From positions 68,882,001-68,946,000 of the forward strand of contig OZ241829.1 in the NCBI GenBank assembly GCA_965202585.1: 64,000 bases of DNA, written 5' to 3'. Both the position numbers and the translations under genes were made by a program. Shown piece after piece: positions 1 through 64,000 of this stretch. The notes beneath the pieces are model-generated. The model searched no databases and was not told where the DNA came from. It saw only the letters and a list, made by a program, of their open reading frames with translations. The DNA is from Thalia democratica. Taxonomy: Eukaryota. How positions within the stretch are numbered: position 1 is the stretch's first letter; the number at the start of each line of letters is the position of its first letter.

Positions 1-351
1 TTTTTAGAATATAGTTTTATTTAACTTAAATACTTATAAGAACAAAAAAGATTTTGTAACACACCGTAATACTTAACTAAAAAAAGTTGTAAATTTTTGT
101 CTAACATTTATTTAGAGTTGTTTACTTAAATAAAACTTCTGGTTTTATGGCAATTCAAATTCCGACAACAATTCAAATTAACAAAAAGAAAAACTTAATT
201 AAATGCCAGAACTCAAAAAATAATAAATATTTGGAAAAATTTTAAATGTGTAGGTAGGTTTAATTGATATGTGCAAAAAAATTATTATTTTTTACTTTTA
301 TAGAACGAGGAAAAAGTAAAATGTTGTGAAGTTCAAGACTTTTGTTTTTAC

Positions 352-419
352 ATATTGCAGCCTTCGAGCATTTTTGTAGCAAAATTTTTTTTTTACTTAT
401 AAAGGATTGCCGACCCCTG
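352..419. mobile_element. Terminal fragment of a hAT (Charlie-like) element (also ~18547-18563, 36692-36708, 54695-54711)
   Basis: aggattgccgacccctg (403-419) is the reverse complement of CAGGGGTCGGCAATCCT, the classic hAT terminus, preceded by a gcagccttcgag subterminal-like motif. No partner end found. Confidence 0.55.
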
Positions 420-2874
420 CCTAATTTTTAGTTTAGTAATGCTCAACTGGATGATATAAACTAAATAGTTTGGTGCATAAATGAATAAATTATTTTAACT
501 TCATTGTTTGCTTTTATTTTCAATTTTATTAAAGATTGTTTGCTGGAGTTTTTTCTAACAATGGCACTTAAAAAACAATCAGCTGACATATAAATTATTT
601 TGAAATGTTACGACTGTAACATATAAAGATAATAAGACAAAATATTATAAAACAATATATAACTTTAAACTTTATAGTTATACACGTTTTGCATAACAAG
701 TAATTTTAGTCTTAGTTTAAATAAAATCACTACATTGTTAAAAAGTTGTTAGCTTTTTTATTTAATAACTGATTATTTCAAACATTACATTTATATTATG
801 GTTTTTACCAAAATTAAACTAAACTATGGTAAATAAATACAGTCATTTAACAGTTTTAGGAATAAAACAGCAAGTTTTATTTTATCTTCTATAATTCTTC
901 ATTTTTTTAAAAATGTGAAAAAACAATCAATTAAGTTTAAACAGAACTTTTTACTTATAATGATTAGTTTATTTTTATCAAAAAAAAAGTTAATTGAATT
1001 TGAATTAGTCTCAATTGTAATTTAAATCTAAATTTTTAGTACATTTTCTTATGCTTGATTATGGAGTTTCTCATAACTCGTTTAGCTTGATGTTTAAACT
1101 GAATATATAAAGTTTACAAGGTTACTAGCGCACGTACAGTAAAATACTTATTACTATTACTTATATTACTATCATATTACTAAAATATTTCAAGTTTAAA
1201 ACTTTTAGTTAGTTTATTTAATAAGCTATAAGAAAAGTTTTATATAAACTTGAATTATTTATAAACTTAAGTATTATCAAAAGAGATTTCAGTTCTGATT
1301 GAAACTTTGTGAAATAATAATTAATATAAGTTACTAGTATGGTAATTTAGGTTACCAAAAAAAATACTGGCAACAAGTAAGCCCAACCCGAGTCCCCGGA
1401 TTTGAACAATGAATATTAAACCATGATACTATTGTTTTACACGTAAAATTTCGTATTTATTATTAAACTTCAGAGTAAACAAAGTAAACTAAAATGTGCC
1501 CTTGAAGGGTGCTAAAAGACCGTGAAACACAGTCATCAATCGCAGATATGTACTAGAGTTTTAATTAAAGGTCTTAATTTAAATTAATGTATTACAATTT
1601 TCTACTTTTTTGATTATATTTATTTTTTTGAAAGTTTCTATTTTTAGTTTATTAACACAAGGCTACTATACTTTTCACTTAAAATAAGCTTAGAAAGAAG
1701 ACAAAGCTGCTCATTTTACATAAAACATTAACGCAAATATTGATATTTGAAAAAATTTCCATTCAAAAGTTGCATAGGTAGTTCAAATATACTTTTTAAT
1801 ACTTTTTTTTTGTTTAAAACAAACAGTAAAAAAGTACTTATTTAATGTTTTTATTATCAAAAGTTTTAATTTTTTTATTAAGCAAAATTTGGATTTATCA
1901 AGCTTTAATTAACTTTTATAACAAAGTACGTGTAAATTTTACTACTTTTTGTTATAAAATGCTTATAAATATAAGTCATTTTTAAAATATTAATTTTGAG
2001 TCATAACGACAGTTAATTTAAAAGTACTTTTGGAAAATTTTAAAGTAAATAAGAGTTAAGGTTGTCATTTTTGCATATTGACAGTAAAAATCGACGTAAT
2101 AAACTAATCCTTCTTTTTAAGATCAAACTAATAGTGCAGAAACTTAAAGTTTAAATTTTTCAGCGAAAAAACTAAAGATGGATGATAAGTATTGTCTTTT
2201 GCTTAATATCTAAAATATTAATAAGTTACTGATAAAAAGCGCAAACTAGTTAAAAGAATCTATTTTGATAAAGACCGAATAAAGTACTAATAAATAATAA
2301 CGATCTAGTTAGTATATTTTAATATGAATAAAATAGTATTTTAGTTCTGATGAAACTTTGTGACAGCGTAAATTTTATAAATGACTTGTATAGTATATCA
2401 AGTTAAGTATACTAATATTAAATATACTTATAATAAATATAATATAAATAAAGTTAAATATACTTAAATAAAATTGAGCAAAAAGTGACCCAAACAGCTA
2501 GTTTTCAACGCACAGACTTCAACCGCTACACTATCGTTCCACAGTCGCATATACTAACTTTTAAAATATCAACTCAACTTTCTATTTTTTTTATCTTTTT
2601 ATGTTCAAAACTTATTTGTTTTTTACTTAGCAATAATATACAAATGGACTATTGTTTGAACTGTTTTAAAAGTGATTATTTTTTCATCAACATGTTTGAA
2701 AAGTTTCTGCTAGTTTGAAGTTTAAAACTTATACAGCTTTTATACTTCATGAAAACACATTAACTAAAGTTTTACTTTTGTAAAGTTTCGAAATAGTTTT
2801 AACTCTTTATATATTTTAGTCATTATGTTGCATAATAACTGAATTTAAGAGTAAACACAACTAACAAAAAATGT

Positions 2875-2946
2875 GTTCAATATGGGATTCGAACCTAGTA
2901 CTAAATGATTGAATGATGTAGCTTCCTACCGCTGTGCTACGAGAAC
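2875..2946 (-). mobile_element. tRNA-derived SINE head / tRNA-like relic 1 (copies ~20972-21043, ~39071-39140, ~57088-57160)
   Basis: Minus strand has A box TAGCACAGCGG and B box GGTTCGAATCC at tRNA-like spacing. No clean cloverleaf; the B box is mutated in units 2 and 3. Confidence 0.6.
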
Positions 2947-3283
2947 TTTTGATTCTGATGCTTAATTTAATAATATATATTATATTTTATATCTTTTTTG
3001 CTTATTTTTATATCATATTTTTTAGTTTAATTAGTAATAAAGTATCTTCCTAATAAAGTATGCTTAGCAAAACTTCAAAAAGTTTTATTGTCAACTACGG
3101 CAAAAGACAACGACGATGTTCAAATGTCAATCTTAGTAGGTTTGCTTTTTTAATAAAATAGTATTTTTGCGACTTAAAATGAACAAAGTTATATGGTTAA
3201 TATTAAATATTAAGTGATAATCATCTAACAAGTATTGTTCAAGTAATCAACGTAAAAATTAATTTTAACAAGAAGGAAGAAAA

Positions 3284-3354
3284 GCATGGCACTACCAAGG
3301 TTCGAACCCACTACGTCTGCAGTTCCAACCTGACGCTCTACCGACAGAGCCATT
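3284..3354 (-). mobile_element. tRNA-derived SINE head / tRNA pseudogene 2 (copies ~21379-21449, ~39485-39553, ~57505-57572)
   Basis: Minus strand reads TGGCTCTGTCGGTAGAGC (A box with a GCTC/GAGC D-stem) ... GGTTCGAACC (B box); anticodon and T stems are degenerate. Confidence 0.62.
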
Positions 3355-4586
3355 TGAGTTCTTATAATTGCTACTGATTTTGACTTTGTATACTTGATTA
3401 TCTAAATTTAAATGTTTTAAAAATATATTGCAAAAATAGCAAATTTATTTCGTTAATTGATTCTGAATAAGCTCATGCCAGTTTTAATACTTTGGATTTA
3501 ACACTTTCTTTCATACGTTAGCTTTGTATAAAACTAAACGAACTACAACTGTTCAAAATTAATTAAGCTGTGTTTAATGTGTTGCTTTAACCTTAAAGTT
3601 TTATTCTATTTATAGTCAGAAAGAAAAATTATTTTAAATTCGTGAAGAATACTAGTTTTCGTAGTTTTTTCTCACTACTCAGCAATATACATCTAACTAG
3701 TTTACTGTTCAGCTCTTCTTAAGTAAGGAAATACTACTTATTTATAACTTCATTTAAGTATATAAAGACAATATGAACAGTATTAAATGCAAAAAGAAAG
3801 TTTATTCCTTATTGGGTTTTGGTTTAATGCGTTCGAGTCTTAAAAAAAACTTTTAGAATGTATTTGAAAATTGCAACGAAATTTAAAATGATGTGAACTA
3901 ACTGATATAATGACTTTTTAGGTTGCTAGTATTAGTGAAACTAAGCGATACTACAAAAAGAGAAAACAGATAGCTTTTAGAAATTTACAATTAAATGACA
4001 CTTTTTGACCTTTTATCAAACAAGTATGTTGAACAAACGGTTTATAGGCTAAACGTAAACTAGATGAAACTATCAGTAAGTCAATAAGTTCATATAAATA
4101 TCAAACATACTTTTTTTTACACGAAAAGATACTACAATTTATTTTTATATCTTAGAAAATTACATGCTTTCAAAGTTATTTATCAAACATTTATTTTAGT
4201 TTTTAAGTAAGAAAATTAAAAACTAAACTTTGCTTATACTTTACTTTCTAGTAATAAATAGTAAAAACCATTTGATTTAAACTTAATTTAAAACAAATGT
4301 TATGAAATTCTTAGGTTTTTTAAGCTCAAACTAAACAAAAAGTATGCAGAATTTATCTGCATTTTGATTGAGTACACGTTTTATATTTTATTACTTGTTT
4401 TGTATTAAAACTTAAAACGAATGTTCTTGAGACTTAACTTTTATTACATGCGGTATATCAAGTAAAATATGTATAAAACCGTTTACTTCAAAGTAGCTTC
4501 AAAGTAGTTGAGGTTCTAACTTGAAAAAAAAAATATCTACGTCCTGCATGATTAGGCATAAAATTAAAAATAAAAATTTTCAACCG

Positions 4587-4604
4587 CTGGGTGGCGCCAC
4601 CTAG
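4587..4604. other. GC-rich palindrome CT(G/A)GGTGGCGCCACC(T/G)AG inside a small GC island (also 22682-22699, 40805-40822, 58822-58839)
   Basis: Perfect 12-bp palindrome GGTGGCGCCACC in all four units; the consensus across units is an 18-bp perfect palindrome, CTAGGTGGCGCCACCTAG. Confidence 0.8.
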
Positions 4605-4977
4605 TCGAAGACTTCTCCAGAGATTGCACAATGGCCGTTCTAAAAAAATTTAAAATTAGAAAAATTTACTTGTTTTTTCACCACTTGGTGTCTCTGCGAC
4701 CATACCATCCCTATCCCCCACCCACCAACCCCTTACATTTAGCCTTGACTCATACTGAGCGAAACTTTCTTTTTCACTAAAATTAACTATGTACGTAATA
4801 TACCCTTCCAAATGCGTTTTTTACTTTCAACTAAATTTTCTAATTTTTTGTTACTATGCAAACTGTATAAGTAAAAAAAAAACAAAACATTTTGTTATTG
4901 TACAATAGTATATGTATTATAGATTTTATCATCCAGATAAAACAACTTTGTTAAACTAAGACTTTTTTATTGTTATT

Positions 4978-5100
4978 ATGTATTGTGAATATGAAGAAGG
5001 TGTTTGGGATGAGCAAGATGAAGACGCTGATGATGCTGAAAACTGTACAAGTGATAGAGATGATGGTCAAATAAGAAATCGTCAGTTTTCTCTGTTTTAA
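4978..5100 (+). pseudogene. Solo acidic-tail copy of the A/B/C family (40-codon mini-ORF MYCEYEEGVWDEQDEDADDAENCTSDRDDGQIRNRQFSLF); remnant of a 4th paralogue or a micropeptide
   Basis: Matches the last ~40 codons and the 3' flank of gene A; the GC-rich core is absent; in-frame ATG at 4978. Confidence 0.8.
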
Positions 5101-5230
5101 ACAGCAACAACTTCTGATGTACTTGTGAAACTAAACGTTGTTTACTAGGTTAAGAAAATAATTTTTTGTGACATTTTCAGTTTTGTTAATTAGAGTTATT
5201 TAAGAATTTTGCATGTGTGAGATTTTGTTT

Positions 5231-5976
5231 TACTACGGTGCTTGTTTACTTGGGCAATATGTTTCTGTAAATATGTGCGGATAAGTAAAATAAATCTTTC
5301 ATTCTTTCAAATTATATAACTGCTGTATGCTGTGCAATCCGTATTATGTAATAAAAGTTCAGCTCCTCCTTTTGTGCTTTAAACTTCTCTTCACTTTTCA
5401 AAATGTCGTACAAAGTTGACCTGCCTATGCTAAACAGCTCCATTATAAAAAACTTTGGCATGTTGCTTTTTACCATTTTACAAGCTTCTAGTTTATTTTC
5501 AATGGTTAGTGCAACTAGTTTTCTTTTTTTGATGTCTTGTCCATTTCTAAGACCTAGTATATTAAGTGTTTCAAACTTATATAACTTTAAAATTAAAAAA
5601 AAAATTGTTACTCATCGTAAACAAAAAGGGTTTGAATTAACAGCTTTCAAAATATAGTTGGAATTAAAAACTAACAAAAAAGGTCTGTTATATATTTAAT
5701 TTCTAAAAAAACTTAGAGTTTAATCAACTACAAAAAAAACTTTAAAAGATTAAATTAAAAACTTTAAGTCATATTTCAAACATCATTGATTTAAACAAAA
5801 TTTGAATGTAAGCCTTAGAAGAATGGTTACGTCATAATAATGAACTAAATTAAAGACTTTATAAAATCACACAAATTTTTATACAGCATGAAAGCTTAAA
5901 TGTTTGTGTTTAATTTTTTTTTTTGAATTTTCTTATTGACTAAAACTGTCCGGATAAGTGAATAAGCACTGTACTG
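5231..5976 (-). mobile_element. Internally deleted Tigger/pogo-like DNA transposon (CENP-B/HTH_psq N-terminal remnant) with ~30-bp TIRs
   Basis: The minus strand encodes KKRKLVALTIENKLEACKMV...FSIGRSTLYDILK, typical of the pogo/Tigger N-terminal HTH, frameshifted relative to its ATG (MDKTS). The right end, actgtccggataagtgaataagcactgtactg (5945-5976), is an inverted copy of the left end, which is partly deleted in units 1/2 and more complete in units 3/4. Confidence 0.75.
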
Positions 5977-6039
5977 AAATTAACGTTTTTTTAACACCTT
6001 GTTCTTATTTACCAGGGTTTAAAAACAGATCGTATGAAT

Positions 6040-6892
6040 TTTCAGCTTTGTTGGTACATTGATTTTTTGCTGTGTTTGTGTAACACCACAATTAAACATG
6101 TTTAATATTTTGTTAGTTGTACAGTAGTATTTTAAAATTTTCATCATCCAGGTCAAAAATTGTTTGGTAAACTCACTTTTTTATTTATTTCATGTTTTGT
6201 TACAAGTTGTTAGATAAACAAAACACTAATATTTAATTATCTTTTCTTTGTTTTTCAAAAAAATACTTATATGTAAATAACTTTATACTCTTTTAACAGC
6301 TATATGTTTTTTAATGTAATAATTTTTAGCTATTTGCTATCGTATTGAATAAGTTTTATATATTATATATGTTAATCTATCAAACAACTATCACTTATAA
6401 CTTGTATTTAAAATTTTTCTATTTTAATAATTTACTCTTGCTGTTATTAGTAAACATTTCTAATAAAAATTATAAAAATAATGTTAAGTTAATAAAAACA
6501 ACAGTTTTAGAACAATACTTCTGCTTCAACTATTGTTTGAACAAGTAATGTTAACAACTAACTTTACTTCTAAACAAAATATTTTTTTTTAGTCTACCTA
6601 CTTTTTTCTCATAACTTTTTCGAACTTTATTGTCTGAAACTCATGATACTTTTATGGTAAAATATTTTTACGTAGATGTTTATGTTAGTTGTAATAAGAC
6701 TGCTAGTGCAAGTTATTGATATAAAAAAACAGTAGCATTCACGTTACTTTTATTTTATTCATAAAATGATGTTAAACATTAAGCTTTTCAAATATTCTTT
6801 TTAACACGTAAACACCAAAATAAATTTATCAACTTCTTTAATTGTTCATTATCTAACCAACAGATAAAAAAACAAACAAGGTAAATAAAATA
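6040..6892 (+). repeat. Spacer upstream of A, paralogous to the A-to-B spacer (8225-9061)
   Basis: Shared blocks: taacacca, tgtacaatagta/tgtacagtagta, atccag, aactaactttac, aaactcatga, taataagact, ttattgatataaa, aaccaacag..aaacaaacaa..taaataaaataATG. Confidence 0.8.
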
Positions 6893-8053
6893 ATGAAAAA
6901 AAGCTGCATCGCAACGCTGGGAGCTTACCTGCTCAGCAAAAAGACGAACTGCAACTTATTTCCGCAAGGTGTCCTCGCTCGCTCAGATGTAAGTGCCGTA
7001 GACGGCAACTGCGGTCCGCCCGCCAAGCTAGAACCGACGCTTGAGAACATCAGGGACAACCCCTTGAAAGTGAGGCTCTACCGCAAGCCCGCCATTAATA
7101 TCAATCAGCTGACATCGATGCTATTGCACGAGTGCACAGACGAGGACCGCCAGGAACCGTGGGACGTGGGAAGCTGGAACAAAGACTGGGACGGGCTGAA
7201 TACCATCCAACGCCCCAGTTATATGATGGATGATTATAGCAGACATCTGCACCTCCTCGCAAAGGAAGAAAGCGAAAACGGCGAGAGGACTGCCAGAGGC
7301 GCTGATCAGGAAGCGGCGAACCGGAAGCGGGAGCAAATACAGAAAGGGGACTTCACATACCAAATGCACAATCCAAACGCGGTTCGAGAACGACCGGACG
7401 ATTTTTACAAGGATGTGACGGGATTCCCGGTGAACCGGATGGACCCGCCGCATTCTGACGTCACAGTGCCGCGCGGCCACGACGCCAGAGCGGATTTTTG
7501 GGTGATGGAGCACGCCTTCCGCAAAATTTGCTACCGTCACATTTTCGAAAGCGAAGAGACAACCCACTCAACAAGATATGACTATTACCTTTCCGTTCCA
7601 AAGAATCTGGTTGCTTACATTGTGCAGAGGCTCATGCAGTTCCCGCCGGAAACCTTCGGCAGGTTCAGGATCAGCGACGGGTCGCACACCCACGTTAGTA
7701 TCAATTACAACGGGGTGCCACATGTTGTCATCATTGGAGAGACGAGTCACCTGCAAGATGAGTACATGGCCCGCAACCATGACTTCGACCGCGGATTGGC
7801 CGATATTGGCCTGGACGTTCCTGTAGCTACAGACGAAGATCATGGCGGAGGAAGGCAAAACTCTCCTCAAAACGGGCATGGCCATGACGAAGGTCGCATG
7901 AATGATTTCCAAGATGATTTAGATAATGATGATTCATATTGTGAAGAAGAAGGTTTTTGGGATGAGCAAGATGAAGACGCTGATGATGATGAAAACTGTA
8001 CAAGTGATAGAGATGATGGTCAAATAAGAAATCGTCAGTTTTCTCTGTTTTAA
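6893..8053 (+). CDS. Orphan-family paralogue A (386 aa), intronless; GC-rich core plus acidic tail ending RQFSLF
   Basis: Long ORF starting exactly at the AT-to-GC transition, with aaataATG context. Strong third-position bias (46/69 of the first codons end in G/C). ORF intact in all 4 units, with synonymous differences between copies. Two paralogues lie downstream. Product not recognised. Confidence 0.88.
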   Translation: MKKSCIATLGAYLLSKKTNCNLFPQGVLARSDVSAVDGNCGPPAKLEPTLENIRDNPLKVRLYRKPAININQLTSMLLHECTDEDRQEPWDVGSWNKDWDGLNTIQRPSYMMDDYSRHLHLLAKEESENGERTARGADQEAANRKREQIQKGDFTYQMHNPNAVRERPDDFYKDVTGFPVNRMDPPHSDVTVPRGHDARADFWVMEHAFRKICYRHIFESEETTHSTRYDYYLSVPKNLVAYIVQRLMQFPPETFGRFRISDGSHTHVSINYNGVPHVVIIGETSHLQDEYMARNHDFDRGLADIGLDVPVATDEDHGGGRQNSPQNGHGHDEGRMNDFQDDLDNDDSYCEEEGFWDEQDEDADDDENCTSDRDDGQIRNRQFSLF

Positions 8054-8183
8054 ACAGCAAAAACTTCTGATGTATTGGTGAAACTGAACTTTGTTTACTA
8101 GGTTTTAAAAACAATTTTTTGTGACATTTTTAATTTTGTTAATGAGAGTGATTTAAGGATTTAGCATATGTGAGATTTTATTG

Positions 8184-8206
8184 CAGTACAGTGCTTATCC
8201 ACTTAT
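8184..8206. mobile_element. Isolated TIR stub of the same Tigger-like element, downstream of gene A (recurs in each unit)
   Basis: cagtacagtgcttatccacttat is a 22/23 match to the reverse complement of the right TIR at 5945-5976. Confidence 0.65.
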
Positions 8207-9061
8207 TCACTAAAAAATACTAATTTCAAGCTCTGTTGGTTTTGTAATTTTTTTTATGTAAACACCATTTTTTATGTGTTTATGTAACACCATAACTAAG
8301 CATGTTTGACATTTTGTTATTGTACAATAGTATATGTATTATAATTTTTATTATCCAGATAAAACATACTTTGCTAACCTAAGACTTTTTTTTAAATTAG
8401 AAGAAGTTTTTCTAAAAAATAATTAAAATAACAAAAACGACTTTTAATATTTTACTTTTCCCTTTTAAAAAAGTATTCTTTGATATACAACTTGGACTCT
8501 TTTCACAGCGGTATGTTTTATTTTAGTGTATTTTTTAGTTTTTTACTATTAATATTGTACAAAATCTGAGTTTTATTGATGTTAAATTTCACAACAGTCC
8601 TCATTAATAACTGTACTTAAAACTAGATAATTAGAAAATTTTTGATTAATAAAAAACTTTACTAATAAAAATTCATAAATACAGTGAAGAGTTAAAAAAA
8701 AACAATTTAAAACAAAGTTTGTGCTACAACTAATTGTTTTAAAAGTAAAGTCAAAAAACTAACTTTACATTTAAATAAGACCGGTTTTAATTGATTATTT
8801 TTTTTCATCAGTTTTAAAAACATTATCATCTAAAACTCATGACATTTTTACTTCCTTGTTTATGTTAATTATAATAAGACTAGTAGACTAATTATTGATA
8901 TAAACAAACATATACTAGAATATAGGTTTTATTTTACTTATCGCATATATTTAACTTTAAACTTTTCAAACATTTTTTTGAACAAATAAAAACCAAACTA
9001 AAGCTTTTAACTTACTTATGCTCAAACCAACAGAAAAAAAACAAACAAACTAAATAAAATA

Positions 9062-10147
9062 ATGAAAAAGAGCTGCATTGCAACGCTGGGAGCTTACCTG
9101 CTCAGCAAAAAGACGGACTGCAACTTATTTCCGCAAGGTGTCCTCGCTCGCTCAGATGTAAGCGCCGGAGACGGCAACTACCCTCCGCCCCTGGAACCGA
9201 ATGATTTGAACATTAGGAAGCGCCCCTTCAATACGAGGCTCTACGGCGCACCAACGGCGCAGGAGAACGAGCAAATAACGGCCTTGAAAAACAATCCTTT
9301 CACAGAAAACGACCGCCAGGATGAACATCTGCTCGAAAGCAACTGGGACGGGCTGGAAGGTTTCCAAACCGAGCACGACTATGCGAAGTGGATGAGACTG
9401 CACCTGCACTTTTACGCGGTGGGAGATGCCGAAAACGAAACTAGGAGATCAGATCAAACGAATGCCAGGCAGAGTTTTGTAAGGGATCTTTCTGATGGCA
9501 GGTTGCAAAATTACCGCAACACTTTTGAGCGCAAATGGTTCCCGGTGAGCCGGTTGGACCCGCCGCATTCTGACGTCACAGTGCCGCGCAGCCACGACGC
9601 CATAGCGGACTTTTGGGAGATGGAGCACGCCTTCCGCAAAGTTTGCCATCGGTTCATTTTAAACGGAACATTTCAGTTTCGGAGCGCCCGTGAAGCAAAC
9701 GGGAAGAAAGTGACAAAAGGTCCGGAGACAGTTGAACACTGGATTCACATGCCCAAGAACCTGATCGCCTACTTCGTGCAGCGGGTGTTGCAGTTCCCCC
9801 CGGAAACCTTCGGCAGGTTCAGGATCAGCGACGGCTCCCACACGCACTTTTTCATCGACTACAACGGAACACCGAGATTTTATGTCGTTGGAGAGACGAG
9901 CTACCTGCATAAAGAGTACGAAAGAGTCCGTCGTGATTTCGATCGTGGATCGGGCGATATTGGCTTAGACGTTCCCGCCGCTAAAGAAGAAGATCTTGGC
10001 GCGGGAGACTCTCCTCAAATCGGGTCTGACAAAAATTGTGAATATGAAGAAGGTGATTGGGAAGATGAAGACGCTGATGATGATGAAAGCTGTACGAATG
10101 ATAGAGATGATGGTGAAACAAGAAATCGTCAGTTTTCTCTGTTTTAG
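9062..10147 (+). CDS. Orphan-family paralogue B (361 aa)
   Basis: Shares MKKSCIATLGAYLLSKK, FPVSRLDPPHSDVTVPR, QFPPETFGRFRISDGSHTH and the RQFSLF end with A and C; intact in all copies. Confidence 0.88.
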   Translation: MKKSCIATLGAYLLSKKTDCNLFPQGVLARSDVSAGDGNYPPPLEPNDLNIRKRPFNTRLYGAPTAQENEQITALKNNPFTENDRQDEHLLESNWDGLEGFQTEHDYAKWMRLHLHFYAVGDAENETRRSDQTNARQSFVRDLSDGRLQNYRNTFERKWFPVSRLDPPHSDVTVPRSHDAIADFWEMEHAFRKVCHRFILNGTFQFRSAREANGKKVTKGPETVEHWIHMPKNLIAYFVQRVLQFPPETFGRFRISDGSHTHFFIDYNGTPRFYVVGETSYLHKEYERVRRDFDRGSGDIGLDVPAAKEEDLGAGDSPQIGSDKNCEYEEGDWEDEDADDDESCTNDRDDGETRNRQFSLF

Positions 10148-13858: not shown

Positions 13859-13880
13859 CGTTACGTCACAGTTATTAAAA

Positions 13881-13897
13881 CTTATAAAGAAAAATAT
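13881..13897 (-). promoter_or_regulatory. Putative 3' splice/trans-splice acceptor 22 nt upstream of the small gene's ATG
   Basis: Minus strand atatttttctttataag|ttttaataactgtgacgtaacgATG; the AG is conserved in unit 3. Confidence 0.45.
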
Positions 13898-41315: not shown

Positions 41316-41445
41316 ACAGCAACAACTTCTGATGTACTTGTGAAACTAAACGTTGTTTACTAGGTTTAGAAAATAATTTTTTGTGACATTTTCAGTTTTG
41401 TTAATTAGAGTTATTTAAGAATTTTGCATGTGTGAGATTTTATTT

Positions 41446-52900: not shown

Positions 52901-55900
52901 TGTTAAAATATATATAACATTTCAATTGTTACAAAATTTTGTTATAAACAATGATGAAATTACAATATAGTATTTAACATATATTCCTATAAAATATTTT
53001 ATCATTTTAAATTCAATATATGTGTAGTTTTACTTTGAAATTATCTAATAATGTTTTGACAGTCTGATATTTTTTGATCATATAACTGTTATTATATTTG
53101 TTTGATAACTTAATTTCAAAAAAATATACTTTAATGCCACTTTACTTTGTTATTTTTATTATTAAGTAGCTTGAAGTGGTGCTTATTTTATATATAGTAG
53201 AATAGAACAAAAGAAAATTAATGATTACTAAGGTATTGTCAGTTTTATAAAATTTTTGTAATACAGATTTATAGAGAACAACTTGTCTTGACTAAATTTT
53301 TTGAACTTAAAAAAATCTCTTGCATCTAAGGTTTTTTATTCTAGAGAATTAAAGTTTTAAAGATATGTTCCTTGCATGATTAACAGTTTGATGAATAAAA
53401 AGTAAGCAATTCACAATTAAGTTTTAAATTATTGATTTTTTTCAAAAGACTAAAATTTTTTAAAGGTAAAAACATTTCCTAAATAAGATTTTTCCATGAT
53501 AAATACAGATTAGACTGCGAAGGTTTCATAATGAATATGTAAAAAGCTGTAAAAGGAAACATATATCAAAGTACTCAGTATTTTTAGCATTTTTAAGCAT
53601 GGCCTTCCAGAAGACACCTATTGAACTTCTCAAAATTAAGCTCATATTTTTCAAAAGTTACTTTGAATCTTAGGATGCAATAAAAGCAACTAGCAGCTAG
53701 TTTTTAAACTAAGACCAATTTTAAACAAAACTGTCAATTCCCCACCCATGGCCTTTGACAATGAATGTGTAAAATATAAAAACAAATCCTATTTAATAAC
53801 AATGAAGTTAAAGTAAATTTAATTTCCACAAACTATTTTTTAATGCTTTAGAAATAAACTTATTTTGTGTCACAACTAAAATAATTGAAGATATGGACCA
53901 CCATGACTTTTTTCTTTTAAAGGTTATGACTTGATAAAAACAAGTAAGGTTTGAATTTAAAAAATAAAATTAATTAGAAATATATTCTTATATGTGTACT
54001 GAATTTAATTAAGATCAGTAGTAACTATTAGTTAATTTAATAAATTATAAGTTAAAGTTAAATTATGTTTTACTTTCACCAAACTTAGCTTGTAAATAAT
54101 AAAAGGGAAGCCACCTAAAATAGTTAAGTTTTACATATCAGGGATTAAAGCTTATAGTTTAACTCGAAACAATATTTTGAATAAAACTTTAAACTAAAGT
54201 TTTAGAAATATTTTTTTCTAAAATATATATAAAACTCGAGCATCATTAACAAATTTAAAAAACTGCACATAAATGCGATTTTAAAAAATTAAAGTGTTGC
54301 GCTTTTTAGCATATAGTTTTTTTAACTTAAATACTTATAAGAACAAAAAAGATTTTGTAACACACCGTAAAACTTAACTAAAAAAAATTGTAAATTTTTG
54401 TTTAATATTTATTTAGAATAAAAAAAACTTTTGGTTTTATGGCAATTCAAATTCCGACAACAATTCAAATTAACAAAAAGAAAAACTTAATTAAATGCCA
54501 GAACTCAAAAAACAATAAATATTTTGAAAGATTTTAAATGTGTAAGTAGGTTTAATTGATATGTACAAAAAATTTATTTGTTTTTACTTTTATATAGAAT
54601 GAGGAAAAAGTAAAATGTTGTGAAGTTCAAGACTTTTGTTTTTACATATTGCAGCCTTCGAGCATTTTCGTAGTAAGATTTTTTTTACTTATAAAGGATT
54701 GCCGACACCTGCCTAATTTTTAGTTTAGTAATGCTCAACTGGATGATATAAACTAAACAGTTTGGTGCATTAATGAATTAATTATTCTAACTTTCATTGT
54801 TTGCTTTTTTTTCAATTTTATTAAATATTGATTGCTGGAGTTTTTTCCAACAATGGCACTCAAAAAACATCAACTGACATATAAATTATTTTGAAATCTT
54901 ACGACTGTAACATATAAAGATAAAAAGACAAAATATTATAAAACTATATATAACTTTAAACTTTATAGTTATACACGTTTTGCATAATAAGTTAGTTTTA
55001 GTTTAAATAAAATCACTACAACGTTTAAAAGTTGTTAGCCTTTTCATTTAATAATTGATTATTTCAAACATTACATTTATGTTATGGTTTTTACCAAAAT
55101 TAAACTAAACTACGGTAAATAAATACAGTCATTTAACAGTTTTAGGAATAAAACAGCAAGTTTTATTTTATCTTTTATAATTTTTCTTTTTTAACAATGT
55201 GAAAAAACAATCACTTAAGTTTAAACAGAACTTTTTACTGATAATGATTAGTTTATTTTTATCAAAAAATAATTGCTTAGTTCAATTTGAATTAATCTCT
55301 GTTGTAATTTTAATCTTAATTTTTAGTACATTTTCTTATGCTTGATTATGGAGTTTCTCATAACTCGTTTAGCTTGATGTTTAAACTGAATATATAAAGT
55401 TTACAAGGTTACTAGCGCACGTAAAGTAAAATACTTATTACTATTATTTTTATTACTATTATATTACTAAAATATTTTAAGTTTAAAACTTTTAGTCAGT
55501 TTATTTAATAAGCTTTAAGAAAAGTTTTATACAAACTAAAATTGTTTATAAAGTTAAGTATTATCAAAAGAGATTTCAGTTCTGATTGAGACTTTGTAAA
55601 ATAATAATTTATTATAAGTTACTAGTATGGTAATTTAGGTTACCAAAAAAAAAAACTGGCAACAAGTAAGTCCAACCCGAGTCCCCGGATTTGAACAATG
55701 ATTATTAAACCATGATACTATTGTTTTAGACGTAAAATTTCATACCTATTATTAAACTTTAGAGTAAACAAAGTAAACTAAAATGTGCCCTTGAAGGGTG
55801 CTAAAAGACCGTGAAACACAGTCATCAATCGCAGAGGTATACAAGAGTTTTAATTAAAGGTTTTAATTTAAATTTATATATTACAATTTTTTTTCTTTTT

Positions 55901-58900
55901 TTGATTATAAATGTATAAAGTTTTAATTTTTAGTTTATTAACACAAGGATTACTTTTCATCTAAAATAAGCTAAAAAAGAAGATACAACTGCTTATTTTA
56001 CATAAAACCTTAGCGCAAACATTGATATTTGAAAGAGTTCCCATTTAAAAGCTACATAAGCAGCTCAAATGTACTTTTTAATGGCGATTTTGATTTTGTT
56101 TAAAACAAACAGTAAAAAAATACTTTTGTAAAATACTGAATATCAAAAGTTTGTTTATGCATTTATTAAGTTTTAATTTTTTTTTATTTAGCAAAGTTTG
56201 GATTTATCAAGCTTCAATTAACTTTCATTAAAAGTAGGTGTAAATTTTACTACTTTTTGTAATAAAATGCTTATAAACATGAGTGATTTTATAAATATTC
56301 ACATTGAGTTACTAATTTAAAAGTACTTTTGAAATATCTTAAAGTAGATAAGAGTAATGTTGTCATCTGCATGTTTCTAGACATTTTAAACTAATCCTTC
56401 TTTTAAAGTAGAAACTAATAGTACAGAAACTTAAAGTGTAAATTTTACAGCGAAAAAACTAAAGATGGATGACTAGTATTGTTTTTTGCTTAACACTCTT
56501 ATATCTCTTTATAAGTTACTGATAAAAAGCGCAAACTAGTTTAAAGAATCTATTTTGATAAAGACCGAAGATAGTACTAATAAATAATAATGATCTAGTA
56601 GGTATATTTTAATATAATTAAAATAGTATTTTAGTTCTGATTGAAACTTTGTGACAGCGTAAATTTTATAAATTACTTGTATAGTATATCAAGTTAAATA
56701 AAATTGAGCAACAAGTGACCCAAATCGCTAGCTTTCAACGCACAGACTTCAACCGCTACACTACCGTTCCAAGGCCACATCTACTAAATTTTAAATATAA
56801 ACTCAACCTTGTATTATGTTCAAAACTTATTTGTTTTTTACTTTGCAATAATATACAAATGGACTATTGTTTGAACTGTTTTATAAGTGATTATAAGTTC
56901 ATTAACATGTTTAAAAAGTTTCTGCTAGTTTGAAGTTTAAAACTTATACAGCTTTTATACTGCATGAAAACACATTAACTAAAGTTTTACTTTTGTAAAG
57001 TTTCAAAATAGTTTTAACTCTTTATATATTTTAGTCATTATGTTGCATAATAACTGAATTTAAGAGTAAACACAAATAACAAAAATGTGACCAATATGGG
57101 AATCGAACCTAGTACTAAAAGTGTGATGACGCAACTTCCTACCTACTAGACGCTACAAAGACTTTCAATATTGATGGTTAATTTAATTATATATCTTATA
57201 CTGTTTATCTTTTTTGCTTATTTTTATATTATATTTTTTACTTTAAATAGTAATAAAGTATCTTCCTAAAGCGGACATGCTTCGCAAAACTTCAAAAAGT
57301 TTTATTGTTAAGTACGGCAAAAGACAACGACGATGTTCAAATGTCAATCTTAGTAGGTTTGCCTCTTTAATAAAATAGTACTTTTGTGACTAAAAATGGA
57401 CAAAGTTGTATGGTTAATACTATATATTATGTGATAATCATCTAATAAGTATTGTTCAACTAATCAACGTAAAAATTAAGTTTAACAAGGAGGAGAAAAA
57501 AAGAGGGAACCACTAAGAATCGAACCCACTATGTCTGCAGTTCCAACCTGACGCTTTACCGACAGAGCCATTTAAGTTCTTGTAAATGCTACTGATTTTG
57601 ACTTTATATATATACTTGATTATATCAATTTAAATGTTTGAAAAATATATTGTAGAAATAGCAAATTTATTTCGTTAAATGATTCTAAATAAGCACAGGC
57701 CAGTTTTAATACTTTGGATATAAAACTTTCTTTTATAAGTTAGCTTTGTATAAAACTAAATAAACTACAACTGTCTAAAATTAATTAAGCTGTGTTTAAT
57801 GTGTTGCTTTAACCTTAAATTTTTATTCTAATTATAATCAGAAAAACAACTTTTCAAAATTTCTTCTTAACTTGAAGAATACTAATTTTCGTAGTTATTT
57901 TCTCAACTCAGCAATATACTACTGACTAGTTTACTGTTCAGCTCTTCTTAAGTAAGGAAATACTACTTATTTATAACTTCATTAAAGCATACAAATACCA
58001 CATGAAAAATATTAAATGCAAAAGGAAGGTTAATTCCTTATCTTGCTTTGGTTTAATTCGTTCGAGTCTTAAATAACTTTTTAAATGTATTTGAAAGCTG
58101 CAACGAAATCTAAAATAATGTGAACTAATTGATATAATGACTTTTTAGGTTGCTAGTGTCAGTGAAACTTAGCAATACTACAAAAATATAAAACAGATAG
58201 CTTTTAGTAATATCGTTTAATTGACAATTTTTGACCTTTTATCAAACAAGTATGTTGAACAAACGGTTTATAGGCTAAACGTAAACTAGACGAAACTATC
58301 AGTAAGTCAATAAGTTCATATAAATATCACACATATTTTTTTACACGAAAAATACTACAATTGCTTTTATATCTTAGAAATTACATGCTTTCAATGTTAT
58401 TTATCAAACATCTATTTTAGTTATTAAGTAAGATAATTAAAAACTAAATTTTGCTTATACTCTACTTTCAAGTAATAAATAGTAAAAACCATTTAATTTA
58501 AACTTAATTAAAAACAAATGTTATGAAATTCTTAGGTTTTTTAAGCTCAAACTAAACAAAAAATATGCAGAATTTATCTGCATTTTGGTTGAGTACACGT
58601 TTTATATTTATTTTATTACTTATTTTGTATTAAAACTCAAAACGAAATTTCTTGAGACCTAACTTTTATTACATGCGGTATATCAAGTAAAATATGTTTA
58701 AAACCGTTTACCTCAAGTTAATATACGAAATGTTGAGGTTTTCAAAGCTCTATCTTGAAGAAAAAAAATATCTACGTCCTGCATGATTAGGCATAAAATT
58801 AAGAATAAAAATTTTCAACCGCTAGGTGGCGCCACCGAGTCGAAGACTTCTCCAGAGATTGCACCATGGCCGTTCTAAAAATATTTAAAATTAAAAAAAT

Positions 58901-59209
58901 TTACTTGTTTTTTCGCCACTTGGTGTCTCTGCGACCATACCATCCCTATCCTCCACCCACCGACCCCTTACATTTAGCCTTCACTCATACTGAGCGAAAT
59001 TTTCTTTTTCACTAAAAATAACTATGTACGTAATATACCCTTCCAAATGCGTTTTTTACTTTCAACTAAATTTTCTAATTTTTTGTTACTATGCAAACTA
59101 TATAAGTAAAAAAACAAAATATTTTGTTATTGTACAATAGTATATGTATTATTGATTTTATCATCCAGATAAAACAACTTTGTTAAACTAAGACTTTTTT
59201 ATTGTTATT

Positions 59210-59332
59210 ATGTATTGTGAATATGAAGAAGGTGATTGGGATGAGCAAGATGAAGACGCTGATGAAGATGAAAACTGTACAAGTGATAGAGATGATGGTC
59301 AAATAAGAAATCGTCAGTTTTCTCTGTTTTAA
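59210..59332 (+). pseudogene. Solo acidic-tail copy, unit 4 (MYCEYEEGDWDEQDEDADEDENCTSDRDDGQIRNRQFSLF)
   Basis: ATG, frame and stop retained. Confidence 0.8.
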
Positions 59333-59462
59333 ACAGTAACAACTTCTGATTTATTTGTGAAACTAAACGTTGTTTACTAGGTTTAAAAAATAATTTTTTG
59401 TGACATTATCAGTTTTGTTAATTAGAGTTATTTAAGAATTTTGCATGTGTGAGATTTTATTT

Positions 59463-60222
59463 TAGTACGGTGCTTGTTTACTTATCAGGACATGTTGGGC
59501 AATATGTTTCTGTAAATATGTGCGGATAAGTAAAATAAATCTTTCATTCTTTCAAATTATATAACTGCTGTATGCTGTGCAATCCGTATTATGTAATAAA
59601 AGTTCAGCTCCTCCTTTTGTGCATTAAACTTCTCTTCTTTTTTCAAAATGTCGTACAAAGTTGACCTGCCTATGCTAAACAGCTCCATTATAAAAAACTT
59701 TGGCATCTTGCTTATTACCATTTTACAAGCTTCTAGTTTATTTTCAATGGTTAGTGCAACTAGTTTTCTTTTTTTGATGTCTTGTCCATTTCTAAGACCT
59801 ATTATATGAAGTGTTTCAAACTTATATAAATTTAAAATTAAAAAAAAATTTGTCACTTTTCGTAAACAAAAAGGGTTTGAATTAACAGCTTTCAAAATAT
59901 AGTTGGAATTAAAAACTAACAAAAAAGGTCTGTTATATATTTAATCTCTAAAAAAACTTAGAATTTAATCAACTACAAAAAAAACTTTAAAAGATTAAAT
60001 TAAAAACTTTAAGTCATATTTCAAACATCATTGATTTATATAAAATTTGAATGTAAGCTTTAGAAGGATGGTTACGTCATAATAATGAACTAAATTAAAG
60101 ACTTTATAAAATCACACAAATTTTCTTACAGCATGAAAGCTTAAATGTTTGTGTTTAATTTTTTTTTTTTGAATTTTCTTATTGACTGAAACTGTCCGGA
60201 TAAGTGAATAAGCACTGTACTG
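59463..60222 (-). mobile_element. Tigger/pogo-like remnant, unit 4
   Basis: ORF 59557-59922 (-) shows the HTH segment. The left TIR agtacggtgcttgtttacttatcaggaca has 4 mismatches in 29 nt to the inverted right TIR. Confidence 0.78.
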
Positions 60223-61139
60223 AAATTAACGTTTTTTTAACACCTTGTTCTTATTTACCAGGGTTTAAAAACAGATCGTATGAATTTTCAGCTTTGTTGG
60301 TACATTGATTTTTTGCTGTGTTTGTGTAACACCACAATTAAACATGTTTAATATTTTGTTAGTTGTACAGTAGTATATTTAAAATTTTCATCATCCAGGT
60401 CAAAAATTGTTTGGTAAACTCACTTTATTATTTATTTAATGTTTTGTTACAAGTTGTTAGATAAACAAAACACTAATATTTAATTTTCTTTTCTTTGTTT
60501 TTCAAAAAAATAGTTATATGTAAATGACTTTATACTCTTTTAACAGCTATATGTTTTTTAATGTAATAATTTTTAGCTATTTGCTATCGTATTGAATAAG
60601 TTTTATATATTATATATGTTAATCTATCAAACAACTCTCACTTATAACTTGTATTTAAAATTTTTCTATTTTAATAATTTACTCTTGCTGTTATTAGTAA
60701 ACATTTCTAATAAAAATCATAAAAATAATGTTAAGTTAATAAAAACAACAGTTTTAGAACAATATTTCTGCTTCAACTATTGTTTGAACAAGTAATGTTA
60801 ACAACTAACTTTACTTCTAAACAAAATATTTTTTTTTAGTCTACCTACTTTTTTCTCATAACTTTTTCGAACTTTATTGTCTGAAACTCATGATACTTTT
60901 ATGGTAAAATATTTTTACGTAGATGTTTATGTTAGTTGTAATAAGACTGCTAGTGCAAGTTATTGATATAAAAAAACAGTAGCACTCACGTTACTTTTAT
61001 TTTATTCATAACATGATGTTAAACATTAAGCTTTTCAAATATTCTTTTTAACACGTAAACACCAAAATAAATCTATTAACTTCCTTAATTGTTCATTATC
61101 TAACCAACAGATAAAAAAACAAACAAGGTAAATAAAATA

Positions 61140-62300
61140 ATGAAAAAAAGCTGCATCGCAACGCTGGGAGCTTACCTACTCAGCAAAAAGACGAACTGCA
61201 ACTTATTTCCGCAAGGTGTCCTAGCTTGCTCGGATGTAAGTGCCGTAGACGGCAACTGCGGTCCGCCCGCCAAGCTAGAACCGACGCTTGAGAACATCAG
61301 GGACAACCCCTTGAAAGTGAGGCTCTACCGCAAGCCCGCCTTTAATATCAATCAGCTGACAATGATGCTATTGCGCGAGTGCACAGACGAGGACCGCCAG
61401 GAACCGTGGGACGTGGGTAGCTGGAACAAAGACTGGGACGGGCTGAATACCATCCAACGCCCCAGTTATATGAAAGATCAGTATAGCAGACATCTGCACC
61501 TCCTCGCAAAAGAAGAAAGCGAAAACGGCGAGAGGACTGCCAGAGGCGCGGATCAGGACGCTGCGAACCGGAAGCGGGAGCAAATACAGAAAGGGGACTT
61601 CACATACCAAATGCACAATCCAAACGCGGTTCGAGAACGACCGGACGATTTTTACAAGGATGTGACGGGATTCCCGGTGAACCGGATGGACCCGCCGCAT
61701 TCTGACGTCACAGTGCCGCGCGGCCACGACGCCAGAGCGGATTTTTGGGTGATGGAGCACGCCTTCCGCAAAATTTGCTACCGTCACATTTTCGAAAGCG
61801 AAGAGACAACCCACTCAACAAGATATGACTATTATCTTTCCGTTCCAAAGAACCTGGTCGCTTACATTGTGCAGAGGCTCATGCAGTTCCCGCCGGAAAC
61901 CTTCGGCAGGTTCAGGATCAGCGACGGGTCGCACACCCACGTTAGTATCAATTACAACGGGGTGCCACATGTAGTCATCATTGGAGAGACGAGTCACCTG
62001 CAAGATGAGTACATGGCCCGCAACCATGACTTCGACCGCGGATCGGCCGATATTGGCCTGGACGTTCCTGTAGCTACAGACGAAGATCATGGCGGAGGAA
62101 GGCAAAACTCTCCTCAAAACGGGCATGGCCATGACGAAGGTCGCATGAATGATTTCCAAGATGATTTAGATAATGATGATTCATATTGTGAAGAAGAAGG
62201 TTTTTGGGATGAGCAAGATGAAGACGCTGATGATGATGAAAACTGTACAAGTGATAGAGATGATGGTGAAATAAGAAACCGTCAGTTTTCTCTGTTTTAA
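61140..62300 (+). CDS. Paralogue A, unit 4 (386 aa)
   Basis: Intact ORF; a mosaic of unit-1-like and unit-3-like variants plus private changes. Confidence 0.88.
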   Translation: MKKSCIATLGAYLLSKKTNCNLFPQGVLACSDVSAVDGNCGPPAKLEPTLENIRDNPLKVRLYRKPAFNINQLTMMLLRECTDEDRQEPWDVGSWNKDWDGLNTIQRPSYMKDQYSRHLHLLAKEESENGERTARGADQDAANRKREQIQKGDFTYQMHNPNAVRERPDDFYKDVTGFPVNRMDPPHSDVTVPRGHDARADFWVMEHAFRKICYRHIFESEETTHSTRYDYYLSVPKNLVAYIVQRLMQFPPETFGRFRISDGSHTHVSINYNGVPHVVIIGETSHLQDEYMARNHDFDRGSADIGLDVPVATDEDHGGGRQNSPQNGHGHDEGRMNDFQDDLDNDDSYCEEEGFWDEQDEDADDDENCTSDRDDGEIRNRQFSLF

Positions 62301-63311
62301 ACAGCAAAAACTTCTGATGTATTGGTGAAACTGAACTTTGTTTACTAGGTTTTAAAAACAATTTTTTGTGACATTTTTAATTTTGTTAATGAGAGTGATT
62401 TAAGGATTTAGCATATGTGAGATTTTATTGCAGTACAGTGCTTATCCACTTATTCACTAAAAAAATACTAATTTCAAGCTCTGTTGGTTTTGTATTTTTT
62501 TTTATGTAAACACCATTTTTTATGTGTTTATGTAACATCATAACTAAGCATGTTTGACATTTTGTTATTGTACAATAGTATATGTATTATAATTTTTATT
62601 ATCCAGATAAAACATACTTTGCTAACCTAAGACTTTTTTTTAAAATTAGAAGAAGTTTTTCTAAAAAATAATTAAAATAACAAAAACGACTTTTAATATT
62701 TTACTTTTCCCTTTTAAAAAAGTATTCTTTGATATACAACTTGGACTCTTTTCACAGCGGTATGTTTTATTTTAGTGTATTTTTTAGTTTTTTACTATCA
62801 ATATTGTACAAAATCTGAGTTTTATTGATGTTAAATTTCACAACAGTCCTCATTAATAACTGTACTTAAAACTAGATAATTAGAAAATTTTTGATTAATA
62901 AAAAACTTTACTAATAAAAATTCATAAATACAGTGAAAAGTTAAAAAAAAACAATTTAAAACAAAGTTTGTGCTACAACTAATTGTTTTAAAAGTAAAGT
63001 CAAAAAACTAACTTTACATTTAAATAAGACCGGTTTTAATTGATTATTTTTTTTCATCAGTTTTAAAAACATTATCATCTAAAACTCATGAAATTTTTAC
63101 TTCCTTGTTTATGTTAATTATAATAAGACTAGTAGACTAATTATTGATATAAACAAACATATACTAGAATATAGGTTTTATTTTACTTATCGCATATATT
63201 TAACTTTAAACTTTTCAAACATTTTTTTGAACAAATAAAAACCAAACTAAAGCTTTTAACTTACTTATGCTCAAACCAACAGAAAAAAAAACAAACAAAC
63301 TAAATAAAATA

Positions 63312-64000
63312 ATGAAAAAGAGCTGCATTGCAACGCTGGGAGCTTACCTGCTCAGCAAAAAGACGGACTGCAACTTATTTCCGCAAGGTGTCCTCGCTCG
63401 CTCAGATGTAAGCGCCGGAGACGGCAACTACCCTCCGCCCCTGGAACCGAATGATTTGAACATTAGGAAGCGCCCCTTCAATACGCGGCTCTACGGCGCA
63501 CCAACGGCGCAGGAGAACGAGCAAATAACGGCCTTGAAAAACAATCCTTTCACAGAAAACGACCGCCAGGATGAACATCTGCTCGAAAGCAACTGGGACG
63601 GGCTGGAAGGCTTCCAAGAAGAACACAACTATGCGAAGTGGATGAGACTGCATCTGCACTTTTACGCGGTGGGAGATGCCGAAAACGAAACTAGGAGATC
63701 AGATCAAACGAATGCCAGGCAGAGTTTTGTAAGGGCTCTTTCTGATGGCAGGTTGCAAAACTACCGCAACACTTTTGAGCGCAAATGGTTCCCGGTGAGC
63801 CGGTTGGACCCGCCGCATTCTGACGTCACAGTGCCGCGCAGCCACGACGCCATAGCGGACTTTTGGGAGATGGAGCACGCCTTCCGCAAAGTTTGCCATC
63901 GGTTCATTTTAAACGGAACATTTCAGTTTCGGAGCGCCCGTGAAGCAAACGGGAAGAAAGTGACAAAAGGTCCGGAGACAGTTGAACACTGGATTCACAT
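63312..64000 (+). CDS. Paralogue B, unit 4 (5' part; truncated by the window end)
   Basis: ATGAAAAAGAGCTGC at 63312; sequence matches unit-3 B and is open to the window edge (hence missing from the ORF track). Confidence 0.85.
   Translation, partial: MKKSCIATLGAYLLSKKTDCNLFPQGVLARSDVSAGDGNYPPPLEPNDLNIRKRPFNTRLYGAPTAQENEQITALKNNPFTENDRQDEHLLESNWDGLEGFQEEHNYAKWMRLHLHFYAVGDAENETRRSDQTNARQSFVRALSDGRLQNYRNTFERKWFPVSRLDPPHSDVTVPRSHDAIADFWEMEHAFRKVCHRFILNGTFQFRSAREANGKKVTKGPETVEHWIH

Follow-up and report, generated by a model that had tools for sequence, protein, structure and literature searches.

The DNA analyzed here comprises 64,000 nucleotides (nt) from Thalia democratica (NCBI GenBank assembly GCA_965202585.1, contig OZ241829.1, positions 68,882,001 to 68,946,000 of the forward strand). 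This whole 64-kb stretch is referred to as the window, and positions are counted from its first letter. It holds part of a tandem array of ~18.1-kb units that carry three paralogous intronless genes, named A, B, and C here, on the plus strand. The three genes are very probably derived from PGAM5, a mitochondrial Ser/Thr phosphatase, and represent PGAM5-derived pseudophosphatase genes in a tunicate. Taken together, the data are read with moderate confidence as a concertedly evolving array of such pseudophosphatases, which would act non-catalytically and would have been amplified by unequal crossing-over with a gain in dosage. The gene copies in the window are as follows (CDS, coding sequence; aa, amino acids):

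6893–8053, plus strand, gene A CDS, 386 aa, intronless, PGAM5-like (probable pseudophosphatase)
24988–26148, 43163–44317 (384 aa), and 61140–62300, plus strand, further copies of gene A
9034–10885, plus strand, mature mRNA of gene B, CDS 9062–10147, 361 aa, intronless
27157–28242, 45306–46388, and 63312 to the window end (partial), plus strand, further CDS of gene B
10911–12472, plus strand, mRNA of gene C, CDS 10937–12019, 360 aa, intronless
29032–30114 and 47176–48258, plus strand, further CDS of gene C

All copies are open: four of A (386 or 384 aa), three full copies of B (361 or 360 aa) with a fourth cut by the window end, and three of C (360–361 aa; an in-frame ATG at 10934, one codon upstream, would yield 361 aa). 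The open frames claimed by an earlier reading of the letters alone (the sequence-only reading) were thus found in 10 of 10 complete A/B/C copies, in the partial fourth B, and in all three copies of a small minus-strand gene described below.

Relation of the A, B, and C proteins to PGAM5

Pfam gave nothing significant for A, B, C, or the small protein, and PF00300 (His_Phos_1) was not reached at its gathering score, with no match on A, B, or C at E ≤ 1; a single one of 13 family members matched it at E 0.018. When A was compared with PDB sequences by phmmer, human PGAM5 was found at E 4e-7. A family profile was built from 13 sequences, and hmmsearch with this profile against PDB retrieved PGAM5 (E 2.2e-15), with a match that spans the whole phosphatase domain. 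Aligned by hhalign to canonical PGAM5 sequences, the family scored a probability of 99.6% and an E value of 1.5e-23, and WDxNWD lies within the 190 aligned columns. Structure models were predicted with AlphaFold for A (mean predicted local distance difference test score, pLDDT, 49) and for B (60-sequence alignment; mean pLDDT 70.8, 10-residue block means 82–94 over most of the domain). When both models were compared with PDB by Foldseek, the top-20 matches were all PGAM5, with target-normalized template-modeling (TM) scores of 0.65–0.69 and the dodecameric form fitting best. The sequence-only reading had called the genes an orphan family that it could not recognize, and had named a confident hit to a known host gene as a reason to abandon its view; PGAM5 is such a hit, by profile, profile-profile, and structure comparison.

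The predicted models contain only four strands of at least 3 residues (116–123, 228–235, 265–271, and 276–283 in A; 112–119, 223–230, 260–266, and 271–278 in B), as against the six-stranded sheet of the phosphoglycerate-mutase-like fold, and the β2-α2-β3 segment is missing from both. Compared with PGAM5 (branch 1 histidine phosphatase; PDB 3mxo, 5muf, 6cnl), the window proteins are significantly similar in profile and predicted fold over the whole domain and agree in the order β1-α1, β3-α3 loop, α3, β4-α4, β5-β6, and C-terminal tail. They also share xNWD at the same position upstream of the domain and an N-terminal helix rich in basic and hydrophobic residues. They differ in lacking the five catalytic residues and β2-α2-β3, in a β3-α3 loop rewritten to an invariant PVxRxDPPHSD, and in an added acidic tail of 60–90 residues ending FSLF; moreover, the genes are intronless and tandemly amplified, and identity is only ~20%.

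The PGAM5 catalytic center consists of R104-H105 (RHS), R152, E177, and H230, with an adjoining L(S/T)xxG motif (PMC5501728). The corresponding residues were read from two alignments, one by hhalign and one of 60 sequences by MAFFT. The MAFFT alignment shows a gap at RH(G/S) in 13 of 13 family members. The hhalign result places R104 in a gap and pairs H105 with Leu in A; in the family alignment, B and C have Tyr there. H230 is replaced by Pro in all 13 members (PKN instead of HAN), R152 is absent in nine of the 13, among them all window copies, and E177 is not conserved, with D, K, Y, or T in its place according to which alignment is used. Each catalytic residue is kept in 43–45 of 47 PGAM5-like sequences.

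Other parts have been conserved. In PGAM5, WDxNWD docks on the β3-α3 loop and builds the active dodecamer, and the C-terminal tail stabilizes the dimer (PMC5501728). In the family, W5 of xNWD is kept in 12 of 12 members and D6 in 11 of 12 (N/D-W-D), and the C-terminal dimer region is conserved. Invariant blocks are PPHSD, PKNxxAYxVQR, and FGRFR. The β3-α3 loop is rewritten and invariant (F-P-V-x-R-x-D-P-P-H-S-D), α3 is conserved as M-E-x-A-F-R-K, and the β4-α4-β5-β6 block as P-K-N-L-I-A-Y-x-V-Q-R-x-x-Q-F-x-P-E-T-F-G-R-F-R. The predicted N-terminal helix spans residues 3–18 with flanking Lys pairs and has no acidic residue before D32, and the acidic tail (60–90 residues, ending F-S/G-L-F) is new relative to PGAM5. 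Judged from the alignments, this is the profile expected of a pseudoenzyme that kept its assembly surfaces.

The same loop bears on a different explanation, in which A, B, and C are still enzymes with an active site rebuilt from Arg182, His187, and Asp189 of the β3-α3 loop. The stretch F-P-V-x-R-x-D-P-P-H-S-D-V is (near-)invariant throughout the family, which is stronger conservation than is usual for a mere structural loop. However, both His and both Arg of the two-histidine phosphatase center are gone, the models lack a portion of the sheet bearing these residues, and the loop is the docking site of WDxNWD in PGAM5 (PMC5501728), which explains its conservation without catalysis. A rebuilt enzyme is thus considered very improbable, and loss of catalysis is retained as the preferred reading.

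The acidic C-termini of A, B, and C (e.g., 7900–8050) end R-N-R-Q-F-S-L-F, with F-G-L-F in one relative. As an idea only, we take this tail to resemble the D/E-rich G-F-G-L-F-D end of ribosomal P-stalk proteins.

The distribution of the family was determined by a HMMER scan of 1.84 billion representative proteins with a family cut-off of E < 1e-30. Only nine clusters were found within the cut-off, all of them from Tara Oceans metagenomes or metatranscriptomes. The next matches, ~250 after a gap, were ordinary proteins of PGAM5 type and carry this annotation in Strigamia, mirid bugs, shrew, rabbit, and axolotl. Maximum-likelihood analysis recovered the family as monophyletic (97/97 support), on a stem branch of 0.85 substitutions per site. 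Since the A-type copies group with P0002 and P0003 of another species (99/98), the split between A and B/C predates that speciation, and since each B or C copy groups with its own type whatever the unit, the triplet is older than the amplification of the 18-kb unit. The central region, which we infer to have taken the place of the catalytic half and to be where A and B/C diverged, differs strongly between the paralogues. Among environmental sequences, a Tara metagenome contig that is 98% identical spans A and its flanks and is identical to no window copy, and transcripts of more distant family members from other species were present in other Tara metatranscriptomes.

Degenerate PGAM5-like proteins occur elsewhere. 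Those of Apolygus lucorum (KAF6203472.1) and Nesidiocoris tenuis (BES97362.1) and the environmental P0028 and P0035 resemble the window proteins in being derived from PGAM5, with RHG and/or H230 substituted and WDxNWD kept, and differ in forming separate tree lineages and in having a full-length fold and no acidic tail. Loss of RHG and/or H230 was also observed in PGAM5-like proteins of unrelated organisms (mirid bugs and unknown transcriptomes), namely P0028 (L007–L010, Logan SRR27980847 and others), P0017, P0021, and P0035. Going by these sequences, pseudoenzymes seem to have arisen from PGAM5 more than once. The idea that P0028 (Logan) is a more distant family member in another tunicate was rejected: its transcripts carry no spliced leader, and its branch in the tree is long and separate. 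A literature search for PGAM5 pseudophosphatases or PGAM5 in tunicates returned nothing relevant.

Transcripts, trans-splicing, and gene spacing

Three contigs of JGI sample 3300018856 (L004, L005, and L006) encode B-type proteins. The metatranscriptome contig L006 encodes a protein 100% identical to window B, and its DNA is 99.8% identical to 9034–10885; the protein P0158 is 100% identical to B1. L006 is colinear with the genome, so B has no intron, and it ends in a poly(A) tail. At its 5′ end, ATTCTATTTGAATAAG is preceded by a short stretch resembling adaptor sequence, apparently what remains of a template-switch oligo. L006 and the related mRNAs show transcription of B and of B/C-like copies; the sequence-only reading had made transcription a test of its interpretation. 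The transcript features are:

9034–10885, plus strand, ends of gene B: trans-splice acceptor just before 9034, poly(A) site after 10885
just before 6865, plus strand, acceptor of gene A, predicted by homology with B
10886–10910, plus strand, 25-nt gap from the B poly(A) site to the C acceptor, with AG at 10909–10910
near 12472, plus strand, proximal poly(A) site of gene C, preceded by AATAAA (L004)

The sequence ATTCTATTTGAATAAG is identical to the 16-nt spliced leader of Ciona intestinalis (PMC1488885, PMC7986045). In L004, L005, and L006, it is joined at genomic AG acceptors before 9034 and 10911. No copy was found in the window, even with one mismatch allowed. Because the leader joins right after a genomic AG and is absent from the window, the mRNAs are spliced-leader trans-spliced with a leader of the ascidian type. 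The leader places the host among the tunicates, and the open-ocean plankton origin of all related sequences, together with the very AT-rich non-coding DNA, makes a pelagic tunicate (thaliacean) likely. The acceptors recur at equivalent positions in every unit. A and B have the acceptor context and ~250 nt upstream of it in common.

The homology between B and C starts within a few bases of the acceptor, and the duplication that created C therefore put the C acceptor right behind the 3′ end of B. In comparison with the operons of Ciona intestinalis, which are resolved by the spliced leader, the mRNA of the downstream gene likewise carries the 16-nt leader, and the 25 nt between the B poly(A) site and the C acceptor lie below the 84–100 nt cut-offs used in Ciona (PMC1488885, PMC7986045). 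The long 3′ untranslated region (UTR) of B (738 nt) differs from the Ciona operons, as does the fact that no polycistronic precursor was seen here. B and C are thus spaced like two genes of a tunicate operon, and an operon is probable.

L004 and L005 encode a B-type protein 99.2% identical to B1; L004 is nearer to C overall (94.2% vs 93.0%) and is polyadenylated near 12472 in the C 3′ UTR. These two contigs are either recombinant copies outside the window or chimeric metatranscriptome assemblies. One metagenome contig collection, evidently without the Tara metatranscriptomes, was searched with the family profile and with exact 22-mers, and nothing was found.

The first ~120 nt of the 3′ UTR, with the motif TTTGTTTAC.A.GTTTT..GAAC, are conserved among A, B, C (8054–8180, 10148–10270, and 12020–12140), and the solo tail, a gene relic described below. 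The same motif was observed in a transcript of another species (L002, 1126–1239) whose A-type protein is ~62% identical to A. Judging by this conservation, the stretch may be a post-transcriptional control element.

Array structure, selection, and homogenization

The 3.5 head-to-tail units of ~18.1 kb were delimited in the window by repeat finding and self-BLAST:

1–18145, plus strand, repeat unit 1, ~18.1 kb
18146–36295, plus strand, repeat unit 2
36296–54302, plus strand, repeat unit 3
54303–64000, plus strand, repeat unit 4, cut inside gene B by the window end

Unit starts are 18,095, 18,133–18,175, and 17,977–18,017 bp apart, and the array runs off both window ends, with only 3.5 units visible. 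The order in unit 1 is AT-rich spacer, solo tail, A, B, C, convergent small gene, and AT-rich spacer. The spacings and self-BLAST agree with the earlier description of at least 3.5 head-to-tail ~18-kb units with solo tail, A, B, and C on the plus strand and a two-exon gene on the minus strand. Its second level of duplication was also recovered, as modules of ~1.9–2.2 kb nested inside the 18-kb units. Identity to unit 1 is 98.4–99% for unit 2, 88–97.6% for unit 3, and 89–95% for unit 4, with many indels.

The window is extremely AT-rich, with ~49% GC in the CDS islands and ~22% in the spacers; the term GC-rich holds for the CDS only relative to the spacers. There are no N runs, and a scan of the whole window gave no Rfam matches at the gathering threshold and no tRNA genes. 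No open reading frame (ORF) longer than 84 aa was found in the window outside A, B, and C, and with no reverse transcriptase, transposase, or capsid-like ORF among the candidates, a transposon or viral origin was ruled out. Antisense ORFs of 83–164 aa inside A, B, and C were taken as by-products of the GC-rich coding sequence.

D4Z4/DUX4 and RS447/USP17 are known gene-bearing macrosatellites. The array resembles them in its head-to-tail units of kilobase scale (at least 1 kb), all of which carry intact intronless ORFs, and in homogenization between neighbors. It differs in the 18-kb unit, which is much larger and holds four genes and ~12 kb of AT-rich spacer, and in that 3.5 units are visible. 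The array is better described as a tandemly duplicated gene cluster than as a macrosatellite.

The long stretches over which units 1 and 2 are identical would fit an assembly artefact in which one or two real copies were falsely expanded. Against this, the units differ by 1.5–6% in non-coding DNA with 30–101 indels per pair, they carry distinct A, B, and C alleles, and the independent metagenome contig matches at 98% and is identical to no copy. Such an artefact is hardly credible, and the array is treated as real.

Selection on the proteins was assessed from the ratio of non-synonymous to synonymous substitution rates (dN/dS), which is 0.21–0.34 between units and 0.47–0.59 between paralogues. 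For unit 1 vs 3, with A, B, and C pooled, ~25.5 synonymous changes at 687 sites and ~25.5 non-synonymous changes at 2625 sites give a dN/dS of ~0.26. These ratios show purifying selection on the A/B/C proteins at the level of their coding sequences. The sequence-only reading had regarded the ORFs as selected, and the pooled ratio, not near 1, bears this out.

The same reading had contrasted in-frame indels in the genes with arbitrary indels in the spacers. The indel part stands: between units 1 and 3, the CDS has two indels in 3.3 kb, both in-frame (3 and 6 nt), and the adjoining 4.3 kb of non-coding DNA has 16, none a multiple of 3, with 85 more in the outer spacer. For substitutions, divergence is 1.5% in the CDS, 2.1% in the non-coding DNA of the cluster, and 6.8% in the outer spacer. 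Because the cluster non-coding DNA is about as conserved as the CDS, this contrast is largely regional (conversion tract or UTRs). Along units 1 and 3, the gene cluster (5.4–13.3 kb) differs by 0–3.6% and the outer spacer by 5–13%.

In the alignment of the four units, non-coding DNA differs by 1.5–6% between pairs (1.5% for U1–U2, 3.0% for U3–U4, and 4.9–6.3% for the other four pairs), with 30–101 indels per pair. These values are consistent with local duplication in steps or with unequal exchange. Between units 1 and 2, divergence is 0–0.4% over 3431–14836 (~11 kb, all genes) and then 4.5–6.6% over 14837–17800, and this sharp switch indicates a recent 11-kb tract of conversion or unequal exchange. 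Between the B and C regions (9034–10147 vs 10911–12019), the CDS is 99–100% identical in its first 250 nt and its last 100 nt and 74–90% identical in the middle, a mosaic that points to local gene conversion or very uneven constraint. Homogenization of the units, i.e., concerted evolution, is shown by these sequence comparisons.

The pattern of divergence is also what neutral segmental amplification would leave. On that account, the genes are functional and the array arose only as a side effect of unequal crossing-over and gene conversion in AT-rich DNA, with copy number unselected and no germline, drive, or immune biology involved. Units resemble their neighbors (U1–U2 1.5% and U3–U4 3.0% vs 4.9–6.3% for the others), the 11-kb near-identical U1/U2 tract adjoins a 3-kb tract at ~5% divergence, and the cluster non-coding DNA is as conserved as the CDS, which is expected from conversion rather than from selection. 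Against it, all 11 gene copies are intact with a dN/dS of ~0.26, more than expected if they had long been dispensable, although the low divergence (1–2%) gives little power per copy. A purely neutral array is compatible with the PGAM5-derived identity of the genes and is considered somewhat unlikely as the full explanation; copy-number selection and neutral unequal crossing-over are indistinguishable on the present data.

A conflict-type system (germline, meiotic drive, or immune defense) amplified by selection, like D4Z4/DUX4, RS447/USP17, or Stellate, had been the preferred interpretation of the sequence-only reading. A tandem array of intronless ORFs, a lineage-restricted and fast-evolving family (stem of 0.85 substitutions per site; divergent central region), and an acidic low-complexity tail would suit it. 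However, dN/dS is below 1 in every comparison measured, the domain search revealed none of an immune, defense, or drive type, the transcripts stem from bulk metatranscriptomes of plankton without stage information, and the parent gene, PGAM5, is a housekeeping mitochondrial regulator. This interpretation was given up as improbable.

Each unit also carries two minor features, given here with all copies in the window:

4981–5097, plus strand, solo tail, what remains of an A-type gene, its last 38 codons with ~150 nt of 3′ flank (tblastn, blastn)
23076–23192, 41199–41312, and 59213–59329, plus strand, further copies of the solo tail
13309–13858, minus strand, predicted two-exon small gene, exon 1 at 13858–13702, exon 2 at 13370–13309
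31404–31953 and 49547–49977, minus strand, further copies of the small gene

The solo tail (117 nt, one per unit) corresponds to aa 349–386 of A. The region downstream of A (8268–8549) is duplicated and re-ordered around it at 4887–4968 and 6064–6340, and these rearranged pieces are the remnant of an older, broken fourth module. The small gene has exons of 157 and 62 nt and a GT..AG intron of ~330 nt. Its predicted 72-aa protein is hydrophobic and Cys-rich and ends CCS; the unit 1 and unit 3 versions show two amino acid differences. A candidate acceptor (TTATTTCAG) was observed ~50 nt upstream of its ATG. No homologue, Pfam family, or transcript was detected for the 72-aa protein, and apart from the GC-rich island, the splice signals, and three open copies, the small gene is an unsupported prediction.

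Proposed role and significance

In the proposed mechanism, A, B, and C would be non-catalytic, functioning as oligomeric scaffolds or regulators that are probably associated with mitochondria, and might join canonical PGAM5 in mixed assemblies or compete with it. The array would have grown by unequal crossing-over, and extra copies would raise dosage. The specific role as a non-catalytic scaffold or regulator is put forward tentatively, as one possibility.

Several observations weigh against this account or parts of it. No window protein reached the His_Phos_1 threshold, and the evidence for a link to PGAM5 therefore comes from profile and fold methods. WDxNWD has its first Trp only in A-type proteins, with Leu in B and C, which makes dodecamer formation uncertain. 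The N-terminal hydrophobic run of ~12 residues is too short for a classical membrane anchor, and PVxRxDPPHSD, a new invariant cluster of His, Arg, and Asp, could serve as a different active site. The transcript evidence covers B and B/C-like copies only, not A or the small gene; the operon reading comes from one poly(A) site and one acceptor; and nothing shows that copy number itself is selected.

A bolder version of the account was regarded as rather unlikely. Here, an undescribed pseudophosphatase family restricted to pelagic tunicates, with two old types (A and B/C) in operon-bearing 18-kb repeats, would compete or co-assemble with canonical PGAM5 rings on mitochondria and thereby tune mitophagy or cell-death signaling by dosage, with the acidic F-x-L-F tail recruiting a further partner.

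Lineage-specific tandem expansions of diverged housekeeping genes are common. What is new here is a catalytically dead, structurally reduced PGAM5 variant that is tandemly amplified and probably operonic; it is no new category of system. Genes thought to be orphans can now be named: they encode a natural form of PGAM5 that is strongly conserved, has lost catalysis, and retains the oligomerization parts. Such pseudoenzymes often reveal the non-catalytic (scaffolding, allosteric) side of their parent, and the assembly of PGAM5 into rings and filaments is an active topic. The window also documents spliced-leader trans-splicing of the Ciona type, together with a probable operon, in the very AT-rich genome of a planktonic tunicate, and it shows concerted evolution in a multi-gene 18-kb repeat. 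These results are useful for the biology of PGAM5 and pseudoenzymes and for the annotation of pelagic tunicate genomes.

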